Origin: Hemiscyllium ocellatum
Taxonomy: Eukaryota
Assembly (NCBI RefSeq): GCF_020745735.1
Contig: NC_083409.1
Coordinates: forward strand, 16,478,789 to 16,542,788
Length of the DNA: 64,000 nucleotides
Direction: 5' to 3'
Below the pieces are notes generated by a model, which had not been told where the DNA came from, ran no database searches, and was given only the letters and a program-made list of their open reading frames with translations. A program made the translations under genes and the position numbers. Below, in pieces: positions 2,570 through 56,836 of the stretch. Positions within the stretch are counted from its first letter, which is position 1. Each line of letters begins with the position of its first letter.

Positions 2570-3705
2570 AGACAGTCCCAAATTCTCCAATCTATCTTCA
2601 TAACTGATATTCCTCATCCCTGGAATGATCTTTGTGCATATGTTTGCCAGCTCTACAAAACATTCACCTCCTTCCTGCATTATTCACATTATTTATGTCC
2701 CTCATGATTTTATAAACCTCTGTAAGGTCACTCCTCAGCCTCCGGCACTTCAGGGTAAAAGATCTCAGTTTTTCCAGCCACTAATGTTCACAGAGTCAGA
2801 CAGCGTGGAAACAGATCTTTCGGTCTAACTCCTCCATGCTAACTAGATATCCAAAACTGACCTCATCCCATTTGCCAGCATTTAGCCCACATCCCTCTAA
2901 ACCCTTCCTATTCATGTACCCATCCAAACATCTTTTAAATGTTATAATTGTATCTGTCTCCAGCATTTTCTCTGACAGCTCGATCTGGACACGCACCACC
3001 CTCTGTGTGACAAGTTACCCCTCAGGTCCCTTTTGGATCTTTTGCCTCTCATCTTAAACCTATACCCTCTAGTTTTGCATTCCCTTTCCCAAGGCAAAGA
3101 CCTGGGATGTACACCCTGTCCATGCCTGTCAAGATTTTATAAACATCTATAAGGCCACCCCTCAGTCTCCGATCCTGCAGGAAAAATAACCTCTTCCGAC
3201 AGTTCAAACCCTCCAGTTCCAGGCAACATCCATGTAAATCTTTTCTCCAGAATTTTAAGTTTAACAGCATCCTTCCTATCACAGGATGATCAGAATTGTT
3301 CACATTATTCCCAAAATAGCCTCACCAATTTCCTGTACAGCTGCAAATGATGTCCCAACTCTGATACTTAGTGCAGTGACCAATAAAGGCAAGTGTACCC
3401 AACACCTTCTTCATCTCCCTGTCTCCCTGTGACTTCACTGTCAAGGAATAATGCCCCTGCCCCTGCCCATGCACCTGCCCCTGCCCCTGCCCCTGCACCC
3501 TGCACCTGCCACTGCCCCTGCCCCTGCACCGGCCACTGCCCCTGCCCCTGCACCCTGCACTTGCCCCTGCCCCTGCACCCCGAGGTCACTTTGTTGAGCA
3601 ACACCCCACAGGGCCCCACCATTAACAGTACAAGTCCTGCCCTGGTTTGATTTTCCAAAATGCAACATCTCACATTTATCTAAATTGAACTCCATTTGTC
3701 ACACG
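2570..3705 (-). mobile_element. CR1 (HER1-like) LINE 3' RT fragments
   Basis: Minus-strand ORF pieces DTIITFKRCLDGYMNRKGLEG, RRLRGGLIDVYKILTGMDRV and MEFNLDKCEMLHFGKSNQGRT are CR1 ORF2 C-terminal motifs. Confidence 0.85.
3452..3581 (+). repeat. Degenerate (TGCCCC)n hexamer array inside the CR1 fragment
   Basis: About 21 tgcccc/tgcacc/tgccac units read directly. Confidence 0.9.
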
Positions 3706-3915
3706 TTTAGATCGGAGCGGTGCTGGAAAAGCACAGCAGGTCAGGCAACATCCGAGGAGCAGGATAATTGACGTTTCAGGCAAAAGCCCTTCATCAGTAT
3801 TCCTCTAGCTGAAAAGTCGATTTTTCTGCTCCTCGGATGCTGCCTGACATGCTGTGCTTTTCCAGCACCACTCTGATCTAAACTCTGGTTTCCAGCATCT
3901 GCAGTCTGCACTTTT
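3705..3915. mobile_element. Palindromic Penelope-like pseudo-LTR fragment, hammerhead remnant in the spacer
   Basis: Arms gtgctggaaaagcacagcaggtcaggcaacatccgaggagcagga / tctgctcctcggatgctgcctgacatgctgtgcttttccagcac. Minus-strand spacer reads CTGATGA-a-GGGC-tttt-GCCT-GAAAC-GTC. Confidence 0.75.
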
Positions 3916-11810: not shown

Positions 11811-12931
11811 GTTTATCCCATGTGTCTTCTGAACCACCTCACTGACCTGCATTAATCATCATGGCCACATCTTCCACCTCCACACCCATCTGACTTCCAG
11901 CTTCAAAATGATGAGAGACATTCCTTCATTATCTGAGAAACAGATAGAAACATCAAACACAGGAGCAGCAGTAGGCCATTCGGCCCTTCAAGGCCTGCTC
12001 CACCCTTCAATATGATCATGGCTGTTCATCCAACACAGTCCCCTGTTCCTACTTTCTCCCCACATTCTTTGATCCCTTTAATCCTAAGAACTGTATCTAA
12101 TTCCTTCTTAAATACACATTGCATCTAATTCCCTTTTGCTGGAAAAATGGATGACAATTATTGGGTTGTTGTTTTTTGACCAGTATGGACACAATGGGCT
12201 GATGGGTCTTTTGGGCCCCTATGACTCTATTGTTATTTATTATGAATAACTGGGTACCAAGGGCTGACCCTGTGGCACCCTAAGTTGTTATTACCTGCCA
12301 TTCAGAAAAAGACTCATTCTTTCTGTGCTGCCTGCCAACCAGTTCCCAATCCATGTCAGTACGTGAACCCCAATCCTCTTGTTTCTTTGGTCTAGATGTG
12401 GGAGTCCCACCCTTACTCATTGTGGGAACAGATTCTGAACAGTCTGTCTCATCCTTCGAGGGCTCCCACTGCCCTGACACTGATTTCCCATCATGCCATT
12501 GGTTCCGATCCACTTTTACCAAAGCACCACACAGTTTAGTAAAATGAAAACTTTTACACTTGCTCCATGGTTCTCCATTTCCATTCCTCCTCTCAATCTC
12601 ACTGAGTTCTAATCAGTGTCACTAAAATGCTTCCCCATCGATAGCCCTTCCAGCTTCCCACATTCATTCCATAACTGATGGTCCAAAATTGTCCCTTCTC
12701 TCTCTGCTGCTTCACCATCACCTTCTCAGGGACATCTAGGGACGGTAATGAATGCTGGCCCTGCCAGTGACACTCAGATCGCAAGAAGCAATTTGAACAG
12801 TGTCTGTTCTTTTGTTGGGTTTATTCTGTATTGACTAAGAATGTTCAAAAAGATCGTATTGTCAGTGAATATTGTGAGGGTTGAATTCCCTTCAAATGTC
12901 AGGGATTAAAATTGTTTCTTTTGTCTTTCAG

Positions 12932-14166: not shown

Positions 14167-14312
14167 GTAAAAACAAGGACTGCAGATGCTGGAAACCAGA
14201 TTCTAGATTAGAGTGGTACTGGAAAAGCACAGCAGGTCAGGCAGCATCTGAGGAGCAGGAAAATCGATGTTTCGGGCAAAGCCCTTCATCAGGAATAAAG
14301 CTCTATCTGGAA
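14167..14312 (-). mobile_element. 146-bp Penelope pseudo-LTR insertion with degenerate hammerhead, left arm only
   Basis: Begins gtaaaaacaaggactgcagatgctgg. Flanked by an imperfect ~15 bp duplication (tgtgt[gc]ctctctgag). Absent at the mirror site (~56970). Confidence 0.75.
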
Positions 14313-26300: not shown

Positions 26301-27449
26301 GTGATAGAATCATGTAATGATGGAATCTGTACAATGTTGAAGCAGGCCATTCACCCCAATGAGTTCACACCAATCCTCCGAAGAGCATCCCACCCAGATC
26401 CAAACCACTGCACTATCCTGTAACCCTGCATTTCCCAATGGCTCATCCACCCAGTCTGCTACATTGTGAGTGTGAGGGGAGAGTGCTCCCCACTGAGACC
26501 AGGCTGACACCTCCTGGTCCAATGGCCTGCCTTGTTTCCCCATCCCAGCCCACACTTGGAGGAATGAGACCACCTGGGGAGGCTGGAGATGTTTCCCAGC
26601 CAGAGATAGTGCCTTCAGGAGAGAGATGGAGAGCAGATGTTAGAGGCAGGGAGCAGTGGGGACTGTTGTCTTGAGGTGGGGTGTAGGACACATTGAAGCA
26701 GGCGATGGCCGGTGCTGAACGCTTTCCCCAGAAGGAGTTTGTAAGTTGATCGGTGAAAGTGGGGGGGGATCTCTTGCTGCCTGCTCAGTCACGTCTGAGA
26801 GACACACAGACACATCAGGCACACAGGAGGCAGCTTTCTGTGGATGTTCTCCTGGGGCAGGTCTCATCAATCATGGAGCTATGGTCAGTAACAGTGTAAG
26901 CTGTGCGGCCCTGAAAGCCTGAGTCTGCAACTCAGCTCAGAAGGACATCAGCTCATTCGTCAAACCTGGTTCAGCCCCTGCGCAGCCTTTTCACCACTCT
27001 CAGGTTTTCCCTTGTGCCACAGATCATTCTCCTGAGGGACAGTTGTACTCAGGCCCAGCGGAGTGGACTCGATGGGTTGAATGGCCTTACTTCCACTCCT
27101 ATGTCTTATGATCTTGTCACTCTGTCAGATCCTCTTCAAGAAGCTCATGGCTAACCATCGCCCTCTCCAGGATAGTTAGGGAAGGACAATAAATAGCAGA
27201 CACGTCAATGCTCTCCCCATCCCAGGAGTAATCAAAATAACTGATGGACAATTCAAACAATCAAACTGATGGAAGGTGGTTAACTCAGTCCAGTGATTAA
27301 ACTTCACCTGGTAATTCCTGTATTAAGTTCAAGATGAAACTATCCTGGTCTCTGCTGAATTTAGATCAATTTTCATTGTTAACTTAATACATTTCCATCT
27401 TCATTCTTTCTCTCCAAACTGATCCTAATTTGAATGTTGCAAAAAACAA

Positions 27450-27670
27450 AACATTTTGTTGAAGCTTTTTGTCCTGCATACATCAGGACAATTTACAAGA
27501 AATGTCACAGCAAAGGGAAACAATATTTAAACTGGCGTGTTCATAGTGACAACACCTCAGTCTGTCAGCACTTTCCTCATATGCAATATCAATGTCAGGT
27601 TTTTCTCCTTTGATTGGTACTTTTACAATTATCCTGATGAGTGTAAAATGAAAAGCTTCCAAACACTGGG
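27450..27670. mobile_element. Inverted pair of Penelope-like end fragments with hammerhead-derived cores
   Basis: Plus 27634: CTGATGA-gtgtaaaat-GAAA-AGCTTC. Minus 27456-27491: ttgtc-CTGATGTA-tgcaggac-AAAA-AGCTTC-aacaa. Confidence 0.5.
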
Positions 27671-28194
27671 CATTTTTCAGGCCAGTTCAATATTCTCAAA
27701 TGACTATTTGATCCTAATTTGCTCTTTTGCTTCAGACCTGTTCAAATTCCAAGAAGTAATTCTGTCCCATATTGAATGGAGGACCCAGTTTACCAGCACT
27801 CACTAAATTCCAATCTCGGCATCAAAATATTTTTCCTGATCTCCTTCCTGTACTTGGTGTATGACCAGAGAATGTGTCATTTTGCCTTTCTGTCTGTCAG
27901 TATTGACAGTAAATTTACATTTACTGTGTCAATTTCATAATGAAGTTTTGTTATCAAAATACCCTCCCACCCCCCTTGAGATCCTGTTCTGGCATTTCCT
28001 TGTAACCTCGATCTCCTATCCCTGTCCATTCTGCATTGCCCCTCAATGAAGGCCATAACTATCCACCATATTCCAGATGTGACCTAACCATTCTTCAGTC
28101 CAGCTGTCCTGACCACTCTCCCCTCCATCTCCTCACTCTCAATATTCATTCCAAAGTCCCATTGGCCTTTCCCATGTCTGTTCTTATCAGGACA

Positions 28195-28376
28195 GATTAG
28201 ATTAGATTAGATTAGATTAGATTAGATTGCTTACAGTGTGGAAACAGGCCCTTCGGCCCAACAAGTCCACACCGACCCGCCGAAGCGCAACCCACCCATA
28301 CCCCTACATTTACCCCTTACCTAACACTACGGGCAATTTAGCATGGCCAATTCACCTGACCTGCACATCTTTGGAC
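28195..28376 (-). mobile_element. HE1 SINE 3' half with (GATTA)n tail
   Basis: gattagattag...cttacagtgtggaaacaggcccttcggcccaacaagtccacaccgacccgccgaagcgcaacc. Truncated where the Tx1 element begins. Confidence 0.9.
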
Positions 28377-28539
28377 AGGTGTCGAGTTGTGAGTCATCAG
28401 AGCTAGTGGAGAGATCATCGCTGGATCGTGATCGTGATTGGACATTAGAGGATTGTTTGGTTGTGCTGACCTGCTCTTGGTGGATCTTCATGCTGGCTTT
28501 GGCCTAACGCCAATTCAGGGACCAGCCAACCTTGGAGCC

Positions 28540-29967
28540 ATGGCTGCAAATGTGTTGCTGGTCAAAGCACAGCAGGTTAGGCTCAGCAGCCACTCACAGC
28601 CCTGGACAGGAGGTTCGAAACACAGTCAGGGTGACTGTGAAGAAGGTGGAGGAGCACACACTGGTCGATCGGAGAGTGTTTGTGAAGAAAGTGTTGGTGT
28701 GGGTTTTGAGTAGTGTGTACTGCCTGCAGGATTTCCCTGGGGCTGGCTACTTTGATGTGGCCTTCAGGAGTGTGAAGCATTGTGAGCAGCTCCTGAAAGC
28801 CTTCAAAGAGAAGGAAGGGGAAACTTTTTTTTCCACCTTGTTGGTAGTCCTGTTCTATATGTTCTTTCTGTGCAGAGGAGTTGGGTTGTTACAATCCAAA
28901 TGTACAACCCTTATGTCCCAGCGGCAGATGTTCTCACCTTCTTGAAAAGATATGTCCAGGTCGAAGGAGAGAGCATCGATGTGGTTGATCCTTTTGGGAT
29001 CTGGGCCAGCAAAAGACAGGTCAAGGTAACCCTGAGGGTTGATGCCAGCGGGAACATCCTCCACTCACCCTCCAGCTTCGCCATCGGAGGAAACAGAGGT
29101 TACCTGACGTACGTAGGGCAGCCGAAGGTGTGCCGAACCTACGGGAGGTCAGGCCACATGGCGGCCGACTGTAAGGTGACCGTATGCCAAAACTGCAAAC
29201 AGGAAGGCCACCCGACCAAGGATTGTAAGGAGGCCAAGAATTGTAACCTGTGCGGAGAGGCGGACCACATGTATAAGGCCTGCCCAAGACGAGGATCCGC
29301 CAACTACGCACAGATGGTCGGAGGCACCCAGAAGGAAGGGCAGGCGTTAGCGGAGTAGACGGCAGACAGCGGGGAGGTGCAGCAGCCGATCCAAGCTCCT
29401 TCAAGGCAGATGGAGGAAATGGAAGAGGAGGAATCAAAGGAGGCAGAGGACTGGATCACAGTCAAAAACAGGAAGAGAAAACCTCTCGGGGGCCCCAAAG
29501 CCACCCAGCGAAGGGGGAAGCGACACCTACAAGTCGAAGACGCAGGCAGCTCTTCCGATGGTGAGGACGGGTGTAAGAAGGGTCATCATCAGAGGAAGAG
29601 ACAGAGCGCCGTGGGGAGAAAGGAGGGCAGCACCGCCCAAGAAGGAAAGGACGATCCCTCCGAGGGGACGGGTAAAAGCCTCCCCCTACCCGGTGAGAAC
29701 CAGGAGGTACCCACCGGCCCACAGCTCCAGGTATCTGGGAGGAGCGGTCCTATGACAGCCCTGCCGTCAGACGGAGAACTGGTCAGTGCGGACCACGGGC
29801 CCGACACGAAGACAACAGAGTGGGGTAATGGCCCCAGCGCGGATCCGGACAGCCACCTCAGCCCTGGGAAGGTCCAACAGTTTGCCGCCACCACGGGGAT
29901 GCACACAGCTACCCCAGAGGGGCAAGACCAGCAGCAAATGGACACCGGTAAACCTGTAAACTGTTAA
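28540..29967 (+). pseudogene. Tx1 ORF1 (ZCCHC3-like gag with zinc knuckles), disrupted
   Basis: VRNTVRV..YCLQDFPGAGYFDV..VTIQMYNPYVP..QPKVCRTYGRSGH..CQNCKQEGH..CNLCGEADHMYKAC. Frameshifts and TAG at 29356-29358; TAA at 29965-29967. Confidence 0.88.
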
Positions 29968-29968
29968 A

Positions 29969-32900
29969 ATGGGGTTTAAAATTGCCAGCATCAACGTGCG
30001 TAGCATCAAATCGGCTACGCGATGCGCTTCTACGCTGGCCTTCCTGGCCAGCGTCAAAGCCAATGTCCTCTTTCTGCAGGAGTGTGGGATACCGCACCTC
30101 AGCAGTTACAGGAGGTGGTCAAGCATGTGGGCCCATGGGCCATCAGTTTGGTCGGGGGCAACGATAACCGCTCTTCAGGCCTAGGAATCCTGTTGTGGGG
30201 AGGCAACTTCACCATCTCCGAGGTTAAGGAGGTTGTGGGCAGGCGCCTCCTCGTCACGGATGTTAAATACAGAAACGCTCCCGTAAGACTAATCAACATG
30301 TATACCCCAGTGGGTAAGAGTGAACGGTTGGCCGTCCTGCAGCAGCTTCCACTGTTACTGACTATGTCCAGGCCGGTCATTCTGGCCGGAGACTTCAACT
30401 GTATCGTTGATGCAGATGGATGATCCGGCGGGGGGGACAGTAAACTGGACGCCACGTCCAGAGCCCTGATGGACACGGTAAAAGATGAAAAGCTGCACAA
30501 CGTCTTCAGCACCCCTGCAGATGGAGCGCAGCGTAGATACACCAGGTCACGAGCAGACGGGTCTATCCGCTCAAGGATAGATGACCTGTTTGTGTCCCGA
30601 ACGCTCTCGGTCAGAACCAACGACGTCAAGCCGGTGTTCCTCTCTGAGCACTGCCTCCTGCTGGCTGACTGTCACCTACAGGACGAGGAGCGGGTGGGCA
30701 AGGGAACGTGGAAGCTGAACACAAAGCTATTGACCCTGGAAAACATTGAGGAGCTGAAGAGGAACTATGCAGGTTGGAGAACCGCGAAGCCCCTCTTTGA
30801 GTCTCCAGCATACTGGTGGGAAACAGTAAAAGGGAACATCAAGAGGTTCTTCATCCTCAAAGGTGTTCAGGAGGTGAGACAGAGGCAGGGAAAACTGTCC
30901 CACTCCAGAAAAGTATGCAGAACCTGCTCCTGCTGCAGACGTTGGGGGTCGATGTCACGGAGGACCTCAAGGAGGTGAAGGGCCAGCAAGCCTCGCTCTT
31001 TGCCTCGGAGGCTTCCAAGATAAGCTTCCGGTCCAGGGTCCGCTTGGTGAAGCAGGACGAGATGTGCTCACGTTTCTTCTTCCAGAAGGTGCACAAAGAC
31101 AGCTCTGTGCTCAGCAGCCTGAAGGAAGAAGATGGCTCGGTAACGTCATCACAGGCTGACGTCATGAGGATCAGCAAATCCTTCTATGCTAGTCTGTATG
31201 ATGCGAAGCCAACCGACAGCGTGGCCTCCCAGTCGTTCCTGTCCTCTATCACGGAGGTCCTAGATGACGGAACACAAGAGAGGCTGGACCAGCCGCTATC
31301 TCTGGATGAGCTGACCAGGGCCCTCGAGTCCTTCGAAAAGAATAAAACTCCCGGAAGCGACGGCTTACCGGTCGAGATCTATTCCGCTCTGTGGGACTTT
31401 ATTGGCTGGCACCTGCTGGAGGTGTATGTCAGTATGCTTCGGGCAGGTACCATGAGTGAATCCATGAGGAAAGGCATCATCACCCTCATCTACAAGCAGA
31501 AGGGGGAGAGGGACGAAATTAGAAATTGAAGACCGATCTCACTGTTAAACACAGACTGCAAAATCTTGTCAAAGGTCATCGCCAACCAGGTCAAGTCTGT
31601 TCTGGGAGCGATGATCCACACTGACCAACCTGTGCTGTACTGGGCAGGAAGATCTCTGAGATTCTTGCACTCCTCAGGGATACGCTCGCCTACGTGCAGG
31701 CCAGGGGGGTGGACACCTGCCTCATCAGCCTGGACCAGGAGAAAGCTTTTGACCGGATATCGCGTACATATATGACGGATGTCCTCTCCAAAATGGGCTT
31801 TGGGAGGGAATCGGAAATTGGATCAGACTGCTCTACACCAACATTGTCAGTGCAGTCTCAATCAGTGGGTAGGAATCAAATAGCTTCCCAGTTAGATCTG
31901 GAGTCAGGCAGGGCTGCCCACTCTCTCCTGCCTTGTTTGTGTGTTGCATAGAGCCATTTGCCAAATCCATCAGGAAGGATGCGAGCCTGAGAGGGGTGAC
32001 TATTCCTGGCAGCGGGGGACTACAGGTTAAGGCCTCCCTGTACATGGATGACGGCGCCGTTTTCTGCTCGGATCCGCTGTCCGTGCACAGACTCCTGTGC
32101 ATCTGTGACCAGTTTGAACGGGCCTCAGGGGCCAAGGTAAACCGAGGCAAGAGCAAGGCCATGCTCTTCGGGAACTGGACTGACCAGTCCTATATCCCTT
32201 TCACCATCAGGACTGACCACCTGAAGGTGCTGGGTATTTGGTTCGGGGGTGCTGGGGCGTGCGCCAAGACCTGGGATGAGTGGATCAGGAAGATGAGACA
32301 GAAACTAGGCAGATGGGAGCAATGGTCGCTCTCCATCGCGGGGAAAAACTGGTCATCAGGTGTGAGGTACTCTCAGTATTGTTATATGTGGCACAGGTCT
32401 GGCCTATCCCCAGAACCTGTGCTGCCGCAGTCACCCGGGCCATCTTCCACTTCATGTGGAGATCAAAGATGGACCGGGTCCGACGAGACACTATGTACAA
32501 AGACTGGTGCAATGGGGGACAAAACACTCCCAATGCCACCCTCGCCCTGATGGCCACCTTTGTGTGTGGCTGCATCAAGCTGTGCGTGGATCCCCAGTAC
32601 GCAAACACCAAGTGTCACTATGTACTGAGGTTCTACCTGTCCTCGGTGTTGCGAAGGATGGGCCTGGCCTCGCTGCCGCGGAACGCTCCGAGTAGTTGGA
32701 CCGTTCCATACCACCTGTCCTTCGTGGAGAAAATTTTGAAGAAAAACACCTTTGACCACAAGTCCATCAGGAAGTGGTCAGCACGTAGCGTCCTTGAGAT
32801 CCTTCGGGAAAAGGAGAGGGCAGATCCTGTTGAGTGGTTCCCTGAGCAGACTGTCAAAGCCGTTTGGCAAAATGCCTCATCGCCAGAACTTTCCAACAAG

Positions 32901-33365
32901 CACCAAGACATGGCTTGGCTGGTGGTGAGAAGGGCTCTGCCTGTGAGGTCATTCATGCACGCTCGGACTCTCAGCTACACCGCACGCTGCCCTCGAAGCG
33001 GCTGTGGTGGGGACGAGACTGTCACACACCTCCTTCTGGAATGTGCCTATGCAGAGGAAGTCTGGAGAGGAATGCAGTGGTATTTGTCGAGGTTCGTCCT
33101 GAGCAGCGCCGTGACGCGGGACTCCGTGCTCTATGGGCTGTTCCCAGGAACGCACACCGAGACGAACATCAACTGTGCCTGGACGATCATCAACTCGGTG
33201 AAGGACGCTCTCTGGGCGGTCCGAAACCTGTTGATCTTCCAGCTGAAGGAGTTGACCCCGACTGAGTGTTGCAGACTAGCACATTCCAAGGTCCAGGACT
33301 ATGTGTTGAGGGACGCGCTGAAGCTTGGGGCAGCTGCCGCCAAGGTGCGGGTGGGGAAAGACCAC
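29969..33365 (+). pseudogene. Tx1 ORF2 (endonuclease-reverse transcriptase), disrupted
   Basis: MGFKIASINVRSI..LFLQECG..AGDFNC..SEHC (APE); KTPGSDGLP..DQEKAFDRI..YMDD at 32041-32052 (RT); CPRSGCGGDETVTHLLLEC. Confidence 0.92.
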
Positions 33366-33751
33366 CGTTTAACATCTGCCTGTCTAAAGAAGAACAGGGG
33401 GCCCATGCAGTCAATTGGGCTCTGCTGAGTCCTCAGCTCAATATATGGGCATATGAGTGAGAAATGCACAGACCTGTATACAATAACGATAATTTTGAGC
33501 AGTGTATGTAAATGTTGACATATGTATGGCATTACCAAATGTACAGTTCATCAAATTATTTTATGAATATTTTACAAATAAAGTATAATTTTGAAATAAA
33601 AAAAAAGATGTGTACTGCCTGCAGGATTTTCCTGGTGCAGGTTACTTTGATGTGACCTTCAGAAGTGTGAAGCAGTGCGAACAGCTCCTGAAGGTCTTCA
33701 AGGAGAAGGAGGGGGAGGCACTATTCTCCATCTTGTCGGCGATCCCATTGC

Positions 33752-34846
33752 GTAAAAAATGAGGTCTGCAGATGCTGGAGATCACAGCTGCAAATGTGTT
33801 GCTGGTCAAAGCACAGCAGGTTAGGCAGCATCTCAGGAATAGAGAATTCGACGTTTCGAGCATAAGCCCTTCATCAGGAATAAGAGAGAGAGCCAAGCAG
33901 GCTGAGATAAAAGGTAGGGAGGAGGGACTAGGGGGAGGGGCGATGGAGGTGGGATAGGTGGAAGGAGGTCAAGGTGAGGGTGATAGGCCGGAGTGGGGTG
34001 GGGGGCGGAGAGGTCAGGAAGAGGATTGCAGGTTAGGAGGGCGGTGCTGAGTTGAGGGAACTGACTGAGACAAGGTGGGGGGAGGGGAAATGAGGAAGCT
34101 GGAGAAATCTGAATCCACCCCACCAACCTGCGCATACAACGTATTATCCGCCGCCATTTCCGCCACCTCCAAACGGACCCCACCATCTGACTCCCTTGTC
34201 AGATCCACACCCCCCACCAACCCAACCTCCACCCCCGGCACCTTCCCCTGCAACCGCAGGAAATGTAAAACTTGCGCCCACACCTCCACACTCACTTCCC
34301 TCCAAGGCCCCAAGGGATCCTTCCATATCCGCCACAAGTTCACCTGTACCTCCACACACATCATCTATTGCATCCGCTGCACCCGATGTGGCCTCCTCTA
34401 TATTGGTGAGACAGGCCGCTTACTTGCGGAACGCTTCAGAGAACACCTCTGGGCCGCCCGAACCAACCAACCCAATCACCCCGTGGCTCAACACTTTAAC
34501 TCCCCCTCCCACTCCACCGAGGACATGCAGGTCCTTGGACTCCTCCACCGGCAGAACACAACTACACGACGGCTGGAGGAGGAGCGCCTCATCTTCCGCC
34601 TGGGAACCCTCCAACCACAAGGTATGAATTCAGATTTCTCCAGCTTCCTCATTTCCCCTCCCCCCACCTTGTCTCAGTCGGTTCCCTCAACTCAGCACCG
34701 CCCTCCTAACCTGCAATCCTCTTCCTGACCTCTCCGCCCCCACCCCACTCCGGCCTATCACCCTCACCTTGACCTCCTTCCACCTATCCCACCTCCATCG
34801 CCCCTCCCCCTAGTCCCTCCTCCCTACCTTTTATCTCAGCCTGCTT
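33752..34846. mobile_element. Young Penelope-like insertion (GIY-YIG end + inverted pseudo-LTR) nested in Tx1 copy 2
   Basis: ORF piece PGTFPCNRRKCKTC..IIYCIRCTRCGLLYIGETGR..RFREH..HFNS..RLIFRLGTLQPQGMN on plus. 33893-34113 is the reverse complement of 34627-34849. TSD ggcgatcccattgc at 33738-33751 and 34847-34860. Confidence 0.92.
33846..33881 (-). ncRNA. Minimal hammerhead ribozyme motif in the Penelope pseudo-LTR
   Basis: Minus strand: attc-CTGATGA-a-GGGC-ttat-GCTC-GAAA-C-GTC-gaat. Stem I attc/gaat, stem II 4 bp, loopless palindromic stem III (ACGT), GUC cleavage triplet. Confidence 0.75.
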
Positions 34847-34860
34847 GGCGATCCCATTGC

Positions 34861-35157
34861 CCCAAGCTTCAGCTCGTCCCTCAACACATAGTCCTGGACC
34901 TTGGAATGTGCCAGTCTGCAATACTCAGTCGGGGTCAACTCCTTCAGCTGGAAGATCAACAGGTTTCGGACCACCCAGAGAGCATCCTTCACCGAGTTGA
35001 AGATCCTCCAGGCGCAGTTGATGTTCGTCTCGGTGTGCGTCCCGGGGAACAGGCCGTAGAGCACGGAGTCCCGCATCACGGCGCTGCTCAGGACGAACCT
35101 CGACAAATACCACTGCATTCCTCTCCAGACTTCCTCTGCATAGGCACATTCCAGGAG
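34861..35157 (-). mobile_element. Inverted ~300 bp patch of the Tx1 ORF2 3' end inserted into ORF1 of copy 2
   Basis: Reverse complement matches ~33040-33330 with about 13 differences in ~290 nt (by eye): ECAYAEEVWRGMQWYLSRFVLSS...DYVLRD.LKLG. Confidence 0.9.
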
Positions 35158-37099
35158 TCGGGTTGTTACAATCCATATGTACAACCCCTATATTCCAGCG
35201 GCTGATGTCCTGACCTTCCTGGGAAGGTAGATCCAAGTTGAGGGAGAAGCCACCGATGTGATTGATCCCTTTGGGATCTGGACTAGTAAGCGGCAGGTCA
35301 GGGTAACTCTGAGGGTCGATGGTAATGGGGAAATTCTCCACCCACCCTCGAGCTTCACAATTGGAGGGAGCAGAGGCTACCTGACATATGCAGGGCAGCC
35401 GAAAGTGTGCCGAACCTGTGGGAAGGCGGGACACATGGTGGCGGATTGTAAGGTGACCGTCTGCAGGAATTGCAAACAGGACGCTCACCTGACTAAGGAC
35501 TGTCAGGAAGCAAAGAGCTGCAACCTGTGCGGAGAGGCAGGCCACATGTACAAGACCTGCCCAAGACGGGGGAGGCGGGGGGCCCACTTACGCACAGATG
35601 GCTGGAGGTGACAATGTGAGTCGTGGATTCCCAAAGACCAGCAAGGTCCACGCAGACAACAGGGAAACGGAGACTGGTGGTACCCAGAAAGAAGAACAGG
35701 CTGGAGTGGAGGAGGCAGCAGCCAGTGGAGAGACACAGCAGCTGATCCTAGCTCTAGCTGGGCAGATGGAAGCAATGGAGGAGGAGGTAATTGAGAAGGC
35801 AGAGGCGTGGATACCTGTTAAAAACAGGAAGAGAAAATCCTGCCAGGCCCCCAAAGCCTCCCAGCAAAGGGGGAAAAGGCAACTGCACGAGGGAGAGATG
35901 GCCAGCTCTTCGGATGGGGAAGACGAGCGCAAAGAAGGTCATCACCACCAGAAGAAGAGACAAAGCACCGTAGATAAAGAGGAGGGCATTTCCTCCCAAC
36001 CAGGAAACAACGGAACCCCGAAGTCCACCCTCCACCTAGTGAGAACCAGGGGGTACCCACTGCCCAAAACTCCAGGTAACTGAAAGCTGTGATCCTCTGA
36101 CAATCCCATTGTCAGACACAGAACTGGACGGTGAGGACCCTTGCCTTGGCTCAATGACACCAGAGCGGGTAAATGACCCCAGTGAGGAGCTGGATAGCTA
36201 CCTCAGCCCAGCGAAGGTCCAGCAGTTCGTGCTCACCATGGGGATGCAGACAGCTACCCCAGAGACAGGACAGTCAAATGGACAATGGTAACCCCATAAA
36301 CTGGGGATTAAAGAAGGTTCCTTTGTTATTGTAGAACAAGGCACCCACTCACTAGGTGGGTTCCGCTGAAGCCGCATCGAAATAATAAGAGACTGGATGG
36401 TTAATAAAGGGAACTGTAAATAGGATAACTGTAAATTCGATTAATTCAATCTGTTCTTTGTAATGTTAAGACGTGCAATGTATATATCTATGAACGACAT
36501 GACAAATTGTACAGGTACCATTATTTCTATGAATAATGTATATTTTGAAATTTTAAAAAATCCTGTTTTTCTGCAGGCAATACATCTCAAAAGCAATCAC
36601 ATTTGTTTCAACAAAATGTAGTAGACAATATATTTTGGTCCAAGGAAGGACTGGACGTTTTGGCAATGATCTGAATTTGTATCTGGAATTTTAATTAATC
36701 TGTCAACATGGAAAATAATGAATTTGTTTTGTAAGAATATTATGTGTTTTACTTTTGTTGTGGAAGTTTTCAGCAACTGGGTTGCACATTATCAAAATGT
36801 GAGCAGAGTTTTCAGAGCAGATTGTGGATGTGGGTTGGACTGAAGCTTTCTCAGTGAGAGGAAAGTATTAATAGAAAAACAATTTTTTTCAGTTTTCAAC
36901 CCAACAGGCGAAAACCTCAAAGAAGGGCTATGTAATTGGAAGAGCATTGAGTTGTCAGTGTGGCAGAGGGATTTACTGTACTCAGTGCCTTCTTCCTCAA
37001 GCTGCATTCATCCAGACATCCTGATGTAAACAAAACAGAAATTTCTTAAACTCTAGCAGGTCTGGCAGCATCTGTGGAGAGAAAGCAGAGTTAATCCCT

Positions 37100-48104: not shown

Positions 48105-48285
48105 CTGGATAGGTCAGGCAGCATCAAAGGAGCAGGAGAATTGACGTTTCGAGCATTAGCACTTCTTCAGGCTTATGCCCGAAACGTCGATTCTCCTGCT
48201 CCTTTGATGCTGCCTGACCTGCTGCACTTTTCCAGCAACACATTTTGCAGCTCTGATCTCCAGCATCTGAAGTCCTCATTTTCTC
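48105..48285. mobile_element. Palindromic Penelope-like pseudo-LTR fragment
   Basis: aggtcaggcagcatcaaaggagcaggagaattgacgtttcgagc ... gcccgaaacgtcgattctcctgctcctttgatgctgcctgacct. The junction falls inside the hammerhead motif. Confidence 0.75.
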
Positions 48286-56482: not shown

Positions 56483-56836
56483 AGAGAGACACCTACAGGC
56501 AGCACAGAGTAACACACTCACACTGAGAGAGACACCTACAGGCAGCACAGAGTAACACACTCACACTGAGAGAGACACCTACAGGCAGCACAGAGTAACA
56601 CACTCACATTGAGAGAGACACCTACAGGCAGCACAGAGTAACACACTCACACTGAGAGAGACACCTACAGGCAGCTTTTTTGGCTTATGCTCGAAACGTC
56701 GAATTCTCTATTCCTGAGATGCTGCCAACCTGCTGTGCTTTGACAGCAACACATTTGCACCTACAGGCAGCACAGAGTAACACACTCACATTGAGAGAGA
56801 CACCTTCAGGCAGCACTAAGTAACACACTCACACTC
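56483..56836 (+). repeat. 43-bp minisatellite, ~7 units (degenerate units continue to ~56970)
   Basis: cctacagg at 56492, 56535, 56578, 56621, 56664, then 56760 and 56803 after an insertion. Confidence 0.93.
56676..56757 (+). mobile_element. 82-bp Penelope pseudo-LTR micro-insertion in the minisatellite
   Basis: T6 + ggcttatgctcgaaacgtcgaattctc...acatttg, near-identical to the reverse complement of 33789-33868. 14-bp duplication cacctacaggcagc at 56662-56675 and 56758-56771. Confidence 0.88.

Follow-up and report, generated by a model that had tools for sequence, protein, structure and literature searches.

What is a transposable element that keeps its first open reading frame and has lost its second: an accident at one locus, or a member of a lineage that lives by this reduced layout? 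The question is raised by positions 33607-36560 of a 64,000-nucleotide stretch of the Hemiscyllium ocellatum genome (contig NC_083409.1; the whole stretch is called the window below), where a Tx1-like long interspersed element (LINE), copy 1, is followed directly by a second and diverged element, copy 2, whose open reading frame 1 (ORF1) runs almost straight into a 3' end and an A-rich tail. We put at about 0.8 the probability that copy 2 belongs, in decayed form, to a real family of HAL1-like, non-autonomous elements that derive from Tx1 and carry ORF1 only. Judged from the copies that we read, a family element would begin with a 5' untranslated region (5'UTR); its ORF1, which encodes three CCHC knuckles besides two RNA-binding domains of ZCCHC3 type, would be followed by what is left of ORF2, then by the 3'UTR and A-tail.

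Sequence reading, the list of ORFs and a self-BLAST of the window make 33607-36560 a four-part composite, not one clean element. A first-pass annotation had treated it as a single element, overlooking a Penelope-like insertion and an inverted patch of ORF2 inside it. The parts of the two LINE copies are as follows.

28382-33606, plus strand: copy 1, an autonomous-type Tx1-like LINE with 5'UTR, ORF1, ORF2, 3'UTR and A-tail
29965-29967, plus strand: TAA stop of copy 1 ORF1
29969 to a stop at 33428, plus strand: copy 1 ORF2, from its ATG
33607-33751, plus strand: first ORF1 piece of copy 2, starting at about codon 50 and adjoining the A-tail of copy 1
35159-36291, plus strand: remaining ORF1 of copy 2, with the second ZCCHC3-type RNA-binding domain, three CCHC knuckles and a family-specific C-terminal half
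36289-36291, plus strand: TAA, the stop of the family ORF1 in the window copy
36292-36316, plus strand: the family-defining junction, where copy 2 reads CCCCATAAACTGGGGATTAAAGAAG
36313-36528, plus strand: the 3' segment, homologous to, but diverged from, the final ~50 nt of ORF2 and the 3'UTR
36529-36560, plus strand: terminal motif and A-rich tail, conserved and common to the autonomous copies

Copy 1 is about 110 nt short at the 5' end of its 5'UTR and both of its ORFs are broken; the arrangement ORF1-TAA-A-ATG-ORF2 reported for it earlier can be read at 29965-29972. Pfam finds RBD_ZCCHC3_2nd and zf-CCHC in its ORF1 and zf-RVT in the last piece of its ORF2. Copy 2 begins at GATGTGTACTGCC, right behind the A-tail of copy 1, and has neither a 5'UTR nor its first 49 codons (codon numbers are counted from the ORF that begins at ATG in L006, one of the Chiloscyllium punctatum loci, L001 to L007, considered below). 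Its first ORF1 piece matches copy 1 (28714-28844) at 84% identity and L001 (3446-3592) at 90%. From about 35159 identity to copy 1 is 79% and then 72%, as far as 36303, and identity to L001 and L002 is 88-89%, contiguous up to the A-tail; RBD_ZCCHC3_2nd and CCHC knuckles are recognised in the ORF1 pieces (Pfam). The view that this ORF1 belongs to a different subfamily from that of copy 1 stands, with 72-84% nucleotide identity and a synonymous divergence (dS) of 0.6-0.9 between the two. After the junction copy 2 has about 248 nt, then the terminal motif ATGAATAATGTATATTTTGAAAT and an A-rich tail to 36560. Its ORF1 is broken by a TAG at 35228-35230, by 7 inserted nt near 35570 and by the loss of 1 nt both near 36015 and near 36062, and window copy 2 is a dead, decayed member of its family.

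The evidence that there is a family comes from a second shark. The ORF at 35598-36083, which lies in the family-specific part, matches two RefSeq proteins of C. punctatum with 83% and 80% identity; three further proteins are their cluster mates, and the encoding loci were then read. Seven further elements in C. punctatum align unbroken from ORF1 across the junction to the A-tail, with 88-89% identity to the window copy and 93-96% to one another. The junction is thus carried by eight copies: the window copy, one each in L001, L005 and L006, and two each in L002 and L004. L004 duplicates the L002 composite at 99.6-99.7% identity, with the same target-site duplication (TSD), 1.76 Mb away on CM104982.1 (20.52 and 18.76 Mb); the pair could be either a segmental duplication or an assembly duplicate, and we set L004 aside, which leaves six independent copies, the window copy included. 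All eight read CCCCATAAACTGGGNNTTAAAGAAG at the junction and, 20-25 nt on, AACAGGGCACCCACTC (with A for one G in the window copy), and the four ORF2-bearing copies examined (window copy 1, that in L003 and two in L007) all read GTAAAC(T/G)GTTAAAATGGGGTTTAAAATTGCC. ORF1 is therefore kept and ORF2 absent with one junction common to all copies. A 196-nt contig of another organism (organism A) spans 36225-36419 over its whole length at about 85% identity, with more than 31 nt on each side of the junction; a search of metagenome contigs for the exact junction pattern gave 0 matches.

What follows the junction is the cognate 3' end of a Tx1-like element. In a MAFFT alignment (A1) of four family 3' segments with four autonomous 3' ends the sequences are colinear throughout, with AACAGGG, GCTGA, AATGT and the terminal motif among the invariant blocks. 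The family sequence picks up at AAAGAAG, about 50 nt before the ORF2 stop, and continues in the order AACAGGG...GCTGA...CAAATA, 3'UTR, ATGAATAAAGTATATTTTGAAAT and A-tail, and all family copies end in the one motif and an A-tail. On the other side of the join, GGGATTAAA preserves about 9-12 nt of the ORF2 start and meets the ORF2 end at TAAA(G)A; missing are the 7 nt in which the ancestral stop of ORF1 and the first base (A) of the ORF2 ATG lay. Since the ORF2 start (GGGGTTTAAAA) and the site near its end (CTAAAGAAG) have TAAA in common, the family is best accounted for by one deletion, about 3.4 kb long, with microhomologies at its two ends. About 4 codons of the start of ORF2 are left, and about 17 of its end. 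The earlier statement that all of ORF2 is missing therefore holds for nearly all of it but not for these two remnants, and the statement that most of the 3'UTR is not a piece of copy 1's was misleading, the segment being merely diverged. A 5-nt deletion upstream of the junction shifts the ORF1 frame, so that ORF1 ends at the TAA just before the junction; the C. punctatum copies that were read over the ORF1 end all share an earlier TAG, 13 codons upstream.

Several of these copies reached their positions independently. L001 is flanked by an 18-bp TSD with one mismatch, CACAGAAAAAT(A/T)AAAAAG, L005 by one of 18 bp, AACATTGCAATAGTGAGA, and the L002 composite by one of 16 bp, AGATGTACAGCTCGGA. Their 5' ends vary, that of L001 lying 33 nt upstream of the start of the window copy and that of L005 about 67 nt downstream, and the C. 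punctatum family loci lie at different places on three chromosomes. Independent TSDs, A-tails and variable 5' ends, as expected of retrotransposition after the deletion, are all present, and the first-pass expectation of a shared ORF1/3' junction in copies with their own TSDs and A-tails was borne out at these three loci. The sixth copy, L006, is nearly full length: its ORF1 starts at the ATG and is uninterrupted apart from a single frameshift, and the 5'UTR, kept in part, matches that of an autonomous element in L007 at 89% identity.

The autonomous lineage is present in C. punctatum in intact form. L003 and L007 contain elements with an intact ORF1 (450 and 490 aa) and an intact ORF2 (1,135 aa), to which copy 1 is 90-91% identical. 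The L003 ORF2 has Exo_endo_phos (the apurinic/apyrimidinic-type endonuclease, APE), RVT_1 (the reverse transcriptase, RT) and zf-RVT by Pfam, that is, the APE, RT and C-terminal zinc-binding domain of the Tx1 group, and the ORF1 protein (ORF1p) is type I-like, with domains resembling the RNA recognition motif (RRM) together with CCHC (Pfam). Rfam finds U1 small nuclear RNA (snRNA) sequence directly behind four A-tails, that of the ORF1-only L006 and those of three autonomous insertions, two of which lie in L003 and one in L007; at all four the U1 sequence runs from about position 38-41 onward. A search of the whole window found no U1.

L003 7844-7969: U1 behind a Tx1 A-tail (Rfam)
L003 12995-13118: U1 behind a Tx1 A-tail (Rfam)
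L007 ~12127-12252: U1 behind a Tx1 A-tail (Rfam)
L006 4970-5095: U1 behind a Tx1 A-tail (Rfam)
L006 1241-1404: intact U1

The partner Tx1 lineage inserts at one position of U1 genes. Insertion is not strictly U1-specific, and L001, L005 and L002 lie elsewhere. Repeated joins are also seen at one position of the element itself. L002 and L004 each hold a stack of two family units with one autonomous copy, truncated at its 5' end, built up at the ORF1 position where the window copy starts and with 3-6 nt duplicated; the whole L002 stack is bounded by its one 16-bp TSD. A-tails adjoin the ORF1 position (GA)TGTGTACTG, at about codon 50, at 33606/33607 in the window, at 3413/3414 and 4975/4976 in L002, and likewise in L004. 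This stacking fits either self-targeting of the element's own ORF1 or template jumping.

The ORF1 of the family has been under constraint. Nei-Gojobori estimates were made on the open frame of L001, 419 codons long. The window copy compared with each C. punctatum copy gives a dS of 0.19-0.23, a nonsynonymous divergence (dN) of 0.05-0.07 and dN/dS of 0.25-0.29 (bootstrap 95% confidence interval (CI) 0.18-0.46; synonymous excess p ~1e-8, binomial test), whereas the two wrong frames of the same alignments, used as out-of-frame controls, give 0.94-2.33. The prediction of a ratio below 1 in the first-pass annotation is thus upheld. When only the family-specific 3' half is compared, the window copy and the C. 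punctatum copies give 0.30-0.40. Among the young C. punctatum copies the ratio is 0.43-0.66, with CIs reaching 1, as is expected where neutral decay following insertion accounts for much of the difference. All of the compared copies share the deletion, and the divergence therefore arose in ORF2-less lineages with ORF1 constrained. Purifying selection on ORF1, as in a HAL1-like element, is accordingly read from these values with the caveat that the 5' module recombines. The ORF1s of the autonomous C. punctatum elements are mosaics: over some 560 nt counted from codon 50 they match the family at 95-98% identity, and beyond that they are of copy-1 type.

L003 8063-9362: mosaic autonomous ORF1
L007 7150-8482: mosaic autonomous ORF1
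L007 12346-13660: mosaic autonomous ORF1

Such mosaics mean that the ORF1-only and autonomous lineages recombine, and have done so recently. The family-specific 3' half stands at a dS of ~0.6 to every autonomous ORF1 seen.

The abundance of the family can be gauged from raw whole-genome shotgun reads of organism C (1.93 Gb), which were placed on the window stretch at a likeness of at least 82%. The summed depths were as follows.

35581-36148, family-specific ORF1 half: ~115-150
Junction bin: 87
3' segment: ~120-140
ORF1 part common with autonomous elements: 170-350
ORF2 C-terminal fragment (3' end of the autonomous ORF2): ~1,900
Right arm of the Penelope-like insertion: ~9,500

A depth of 120, with the genome assumed to be 3.5-5 Gb, suggests a few hundred family copies. 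The family-specific ORF1 half and the 3' segment occur at about 1:1, which speaks against a parent that bears ORF2, ends in this 3' sequence and is abundant.

Several other explanations can be set against this evidence. Had copy 2 arisen by a one-off internal deletion in a single Tx1 copy, its junction would be unique to this locus, and the window does hold a single copy of it; the seven other C. punctatum copies, in which the junction is the same to the base, and the bridging contig of organism A refute that explanation, and we give it virtually no chance. An ORF1 fragment might instead have come to lie by chance beside the tail of an unrelated element, as might be supposed from BLAST, which sees only the last ~38 nt in common with the 3' end of copy 1. 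This too is refuted, by the colinearity of the whole 3' segment with four autonomous copies in alignment A1, and we find it hardly credible. The first-pass annotation had named both a unique junction and an unrelated tail as outcomes that would tell against a family, and neither was found. The deleted form could also have spread as DNA only, through segmental duplication or tandem amplification and not by retrotransposition. The L002 and L004 composites, 99.6% identical and 1.76 Mb apart on one chromosome, would suit such a history, as would the head-to-tail pairs in which some copies lie. However, L001, L005 and the L002 composite differ in their TSDs and 5' truncation points and have A-tails, and L006 lies in a U1 gene, which makes spread as DNA only very unlikely.

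A further alternative accepts a real non-autonomous family and takes its ORF1 as baggage, with the low dN/dS due to repeated recombination or to a very recent origin. The 5' module, 95-98% identical between family and autonomous C. punctatum elements, fits this, and so do the ratios of 0.43-0.66 with CIs reaching 1 among the young copies. Yet the family-specific 3' half, for all its dS of ~0.6 to the autonomous ORF1s, still has dN/dS of 0.30-0.40, and L001 retains 419 open codons; we consider the baggage explanation improbable, if less so than those above. Some points do weigh against our preferred explanation of a genuine ORF1-only family. Recombination with autonomous lineages could import selected sequence and lower dN/dS without any need for the family's own ORF1. 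Only six independent copies were read as sequence, and none in this sample has a fully intact ORF1, so that the family is at most possibly active today; neither the window copy nor L006 yielded a TSD; the family is known here from genomic DNA; and the depth figures by themselves do not prove that most reads cross the junction.

We suggest that the family would have originated once, through the ~3.4 kb deletion that took nearly all of ORF2 between TAAA-type microhomologies. Its RNA would share with the autonomous lineage a 5'UTR and the conserved motif at the 3' terminus, the latter likely being the RT entry site, and the full-length Tx1 ORF2 protein, with its endonuclease and reverse transcriptase, may copy and insert that RNA through target-primed reverse transcription. 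The family's own ORF1p would probably be needed to coat the RNA, as proposed for mammalian HAL1. We infer this mobilisation in trans because the family encodes no endonuclease or RT, shares its 3' motif with the autonomous copies, is found at the same U1 position and has intact partners; the place of L006 at the U1 position of its full-length relatives is the best indirect sign of it. Of the original idea of a shark HAL1-like lineage mobilised in trans, the ORF1-only family is thus supported by the shared junction, the TSDs and dN/dS, and the trans step is a deduction. The window copy would later have gained the inverted ORF2 patch as filler, then the Penelope-like insertion, together with its stop and frameshifts.

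These later events can be read in the interior of copy 2.

33752-34846, plus strand: Penelope-like insertion, 1,095 bp, with a 14-bp TSD, inverted arms and a GIY-YIG ORF
33755-33883: repeat module of the Penelope-like insertion, ~130 nt
33892-34117 and 34625-34849: arms of the Penelope-like insertion, inverted, 226 nt
34075-34728: GIY-YIG ORF of the Penelope-like insertion (Pfam E=1e-4)
34858-35158, minus strand: inverted ORF2 patch, ~300 nt, from the C-terminal coding region of ORF2, of copy-1 type

The inverted arms and the GIY-YIG ORF identify the insertion as a fragment of a Penelope-like element; its TSD is GGCGATCCCATTGC, 14 bp, at 33738-33751 and 34847-34860. The inverted patch is 93.7% identical to copy 1 at 33332-33017, and the ORF at 34831-35184 on the minus strand translates to the ORF2 C-terminus. 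It takes the place of about 18 nt of ORF1, with 2-5 nt of microhomology at both joints, and looks like filler DNA captured in break repair or template switching. The loose ends of reads at 35153 give CCCATTGTGTGTGCTTCCTGCACAG, the normal, uninterrupted ORF1, and those at 34858 and 35154 run on as normal ORF2; the patch is therefore private to the window copy, these positions having normal continuations elsewhere. Because the Penelope TSD covers the left joint of the patch and includes its first base, the patch came earlier and the Penelope-like insertion later.

The ~130-nt module of the insertion recurs in the window at 14169-14298, 48170-48282, 56682-56762 and 3811-3915. At 28543-28582, just after the ATG of copy 1 ORF1, 40 nt are identical to 33787-33826 of the module; other copies are without them. 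On the minus strand near 33830-33870 a hammerhead-like core, CUGAUGA...GAAAC, was seen by eye; Rfam returned nothing credible for a hammerhead ribozyme in 27000-37500 at E<=0.1 or in 33740-33900 at E<=10, and at the gathering score no match over the whole window. As to the flanks of the composite, 28250-28420 and 36540-36680 have no common word of at least 7 nt that could be a TSD, and the missing 5' part of copy 2 was sought upstream of copy 1 and is absent there. A SINE-like repeat (SINE, short interspersed element) headed by (GATTA)n occupies 28196-28378, right against the 5' end of copy 1, and target flank that would be informative on the order of insertion may have been lost or shifted through it. 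The 3' flank of copy 2, at 36575-36900, is another low-copy repeat and not single-copy sequence, with a raw-read depth of 8-36 against ~0.4 expected and fixed differences at 36731 and 36742.

The family also bears on gene annotation in sharks. RefSeq models lie on ORF1-only copies (XP_072406761 and its isoforms, XP_072440864, XP_072440856, XP_072414036 and XP_072405804), and all are named 'uncharacterized protein'. The one 'ZCCHC3-like' model checked, from Mobula hypostoma (P0007), has an APE/RT gene directly after it and is therefore the ORF1 of an ORF2-bearing LINE. The suggestion that the family might account for some 'ZCCHC3-like' models in shark annotations holds in so far as RefSeq models do lie on such copies, but not for their name or for the model checked. 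Exact database look-ups had neither the 161-aa ORF of the window nor protein P0005 on record. Among the proteins that cluster at 90% or more with shark Tx1 ORF1 is one of 93 aa recorded as 'hypothetical protein [Proteus mirabilis]' (MBB6707171.1), which probably stems from shark DNA in a contaminated bacterial assembly.

HAL1, described in mammals as a derivative of L1, is the textbook case of an ORF1 alone sustaining a non-autonomous lineage. Were an independent second case established, the 'half-LINE' strategy would be shown to be general; the LINE group here is another one (Tx1-like), the ORF1 is of an unrelated type and the host is a cartilaginous fish. The family offers a natural system for asking about the role of ORF1p in cis, explains shark gene models for ORF1-like proteins without a neighbouring RT, and is a plausible intermediate in the domestication of ZCCHC3-type genes. 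In the full-text literature that we searched, neither an ORF1-only Tx1 derivative nor this shark family came up.

Reportedly, the site-specific Tx1-clade LINEs treated by Kojima and Fujiwara in 2004, namely Tx1L, Keno (in U2 snRNA genes) and Mutsu (in 5S ribosomal DNA), were described as elements with ORF1 and ORF2. The shark partner resembles them in having APE, RT and zf-RVT in ORF2, an RRM-like and CCHC ORF1 and one position in a multicopy small-RNA gene, U1; the shark family differs in being ORF1-only, and its insertion in not being strictly site-specific. Tx1 is a subgroup of L1 with a type I ORF1p, and an ORF1p that is RRM-like with CCHC is consistent with Tx1 (PMC5203782). With the host gene ZCCHC3 the shark elements share RBD_ZCCHC3_1st, RBD_ZCCHC3_2nd and zf-CCHC (Pfam); unlike that single-copy vertebrate gene, they are multicopy and have TSDs, A-tails and LINE UTRs. 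HeT-A of Drosophila (see PMC5537684) is a further parallel, a Gag-only element that relies on the reverse transcriptase of a relative and shares its targeted insertion. HeT-A, TART and TAHRE differ in belonging to the Jockey clade and in maintaining telomeres, and no host function is suggested for the shark family. As a more speculative idea, which we regard as possible but unlikely, the ORF1-only lineage could be no mere parasite of the autonomous Tx1 but a partner evolving alongside it: the RNA-binding module, 95-98% identical over the first ~560 nt of the ORF1 compared, would be exchanged time and again with the lineage that targets U1, in a two-component system like that of HeT-A and TART. 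Such retrocopies may also be a route from Tx1 ORF1 to host ZCCHC3.

The closest comparison is with HAL1 itself, which one account (PMC5753468, summarising Smit 1999; Bao & Jurka 2010) describes as a non-autonomous L1 derivative that codes for ORF1p alone and arose several times in mammals. The L1 machinery is believed to serve HAL1 elements as well (PMC4161310). The shark family is likewise an ORF1p-only, non-autonomous LINE derivative with the LINE ends kept, many copies, a conserved ORF1 and a partner ORF2 protein that is thought to be used. It differs in its host, a shark, and in its parent, a Tx1-like LINE and not L1 proper; in its ORF1p, which is type I with two ZCCHC3-type domains and three CCHC knuckles where that of HAL1 is type II with coiled coil, RRM and C-terminal domain (CTD); and in a partner that inserts into U1 snRNA genes and perhaps its own ORF1 and with which the 5' module of ORF1 is exchanged. 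In the strict sense HAL1 derives from L1 proper and has a type II ORF1p, and the shark family has neither. By its sequence features, we would therefore call the shark family an analogue of HAL1, not a member, and one that falls within the functional definition.

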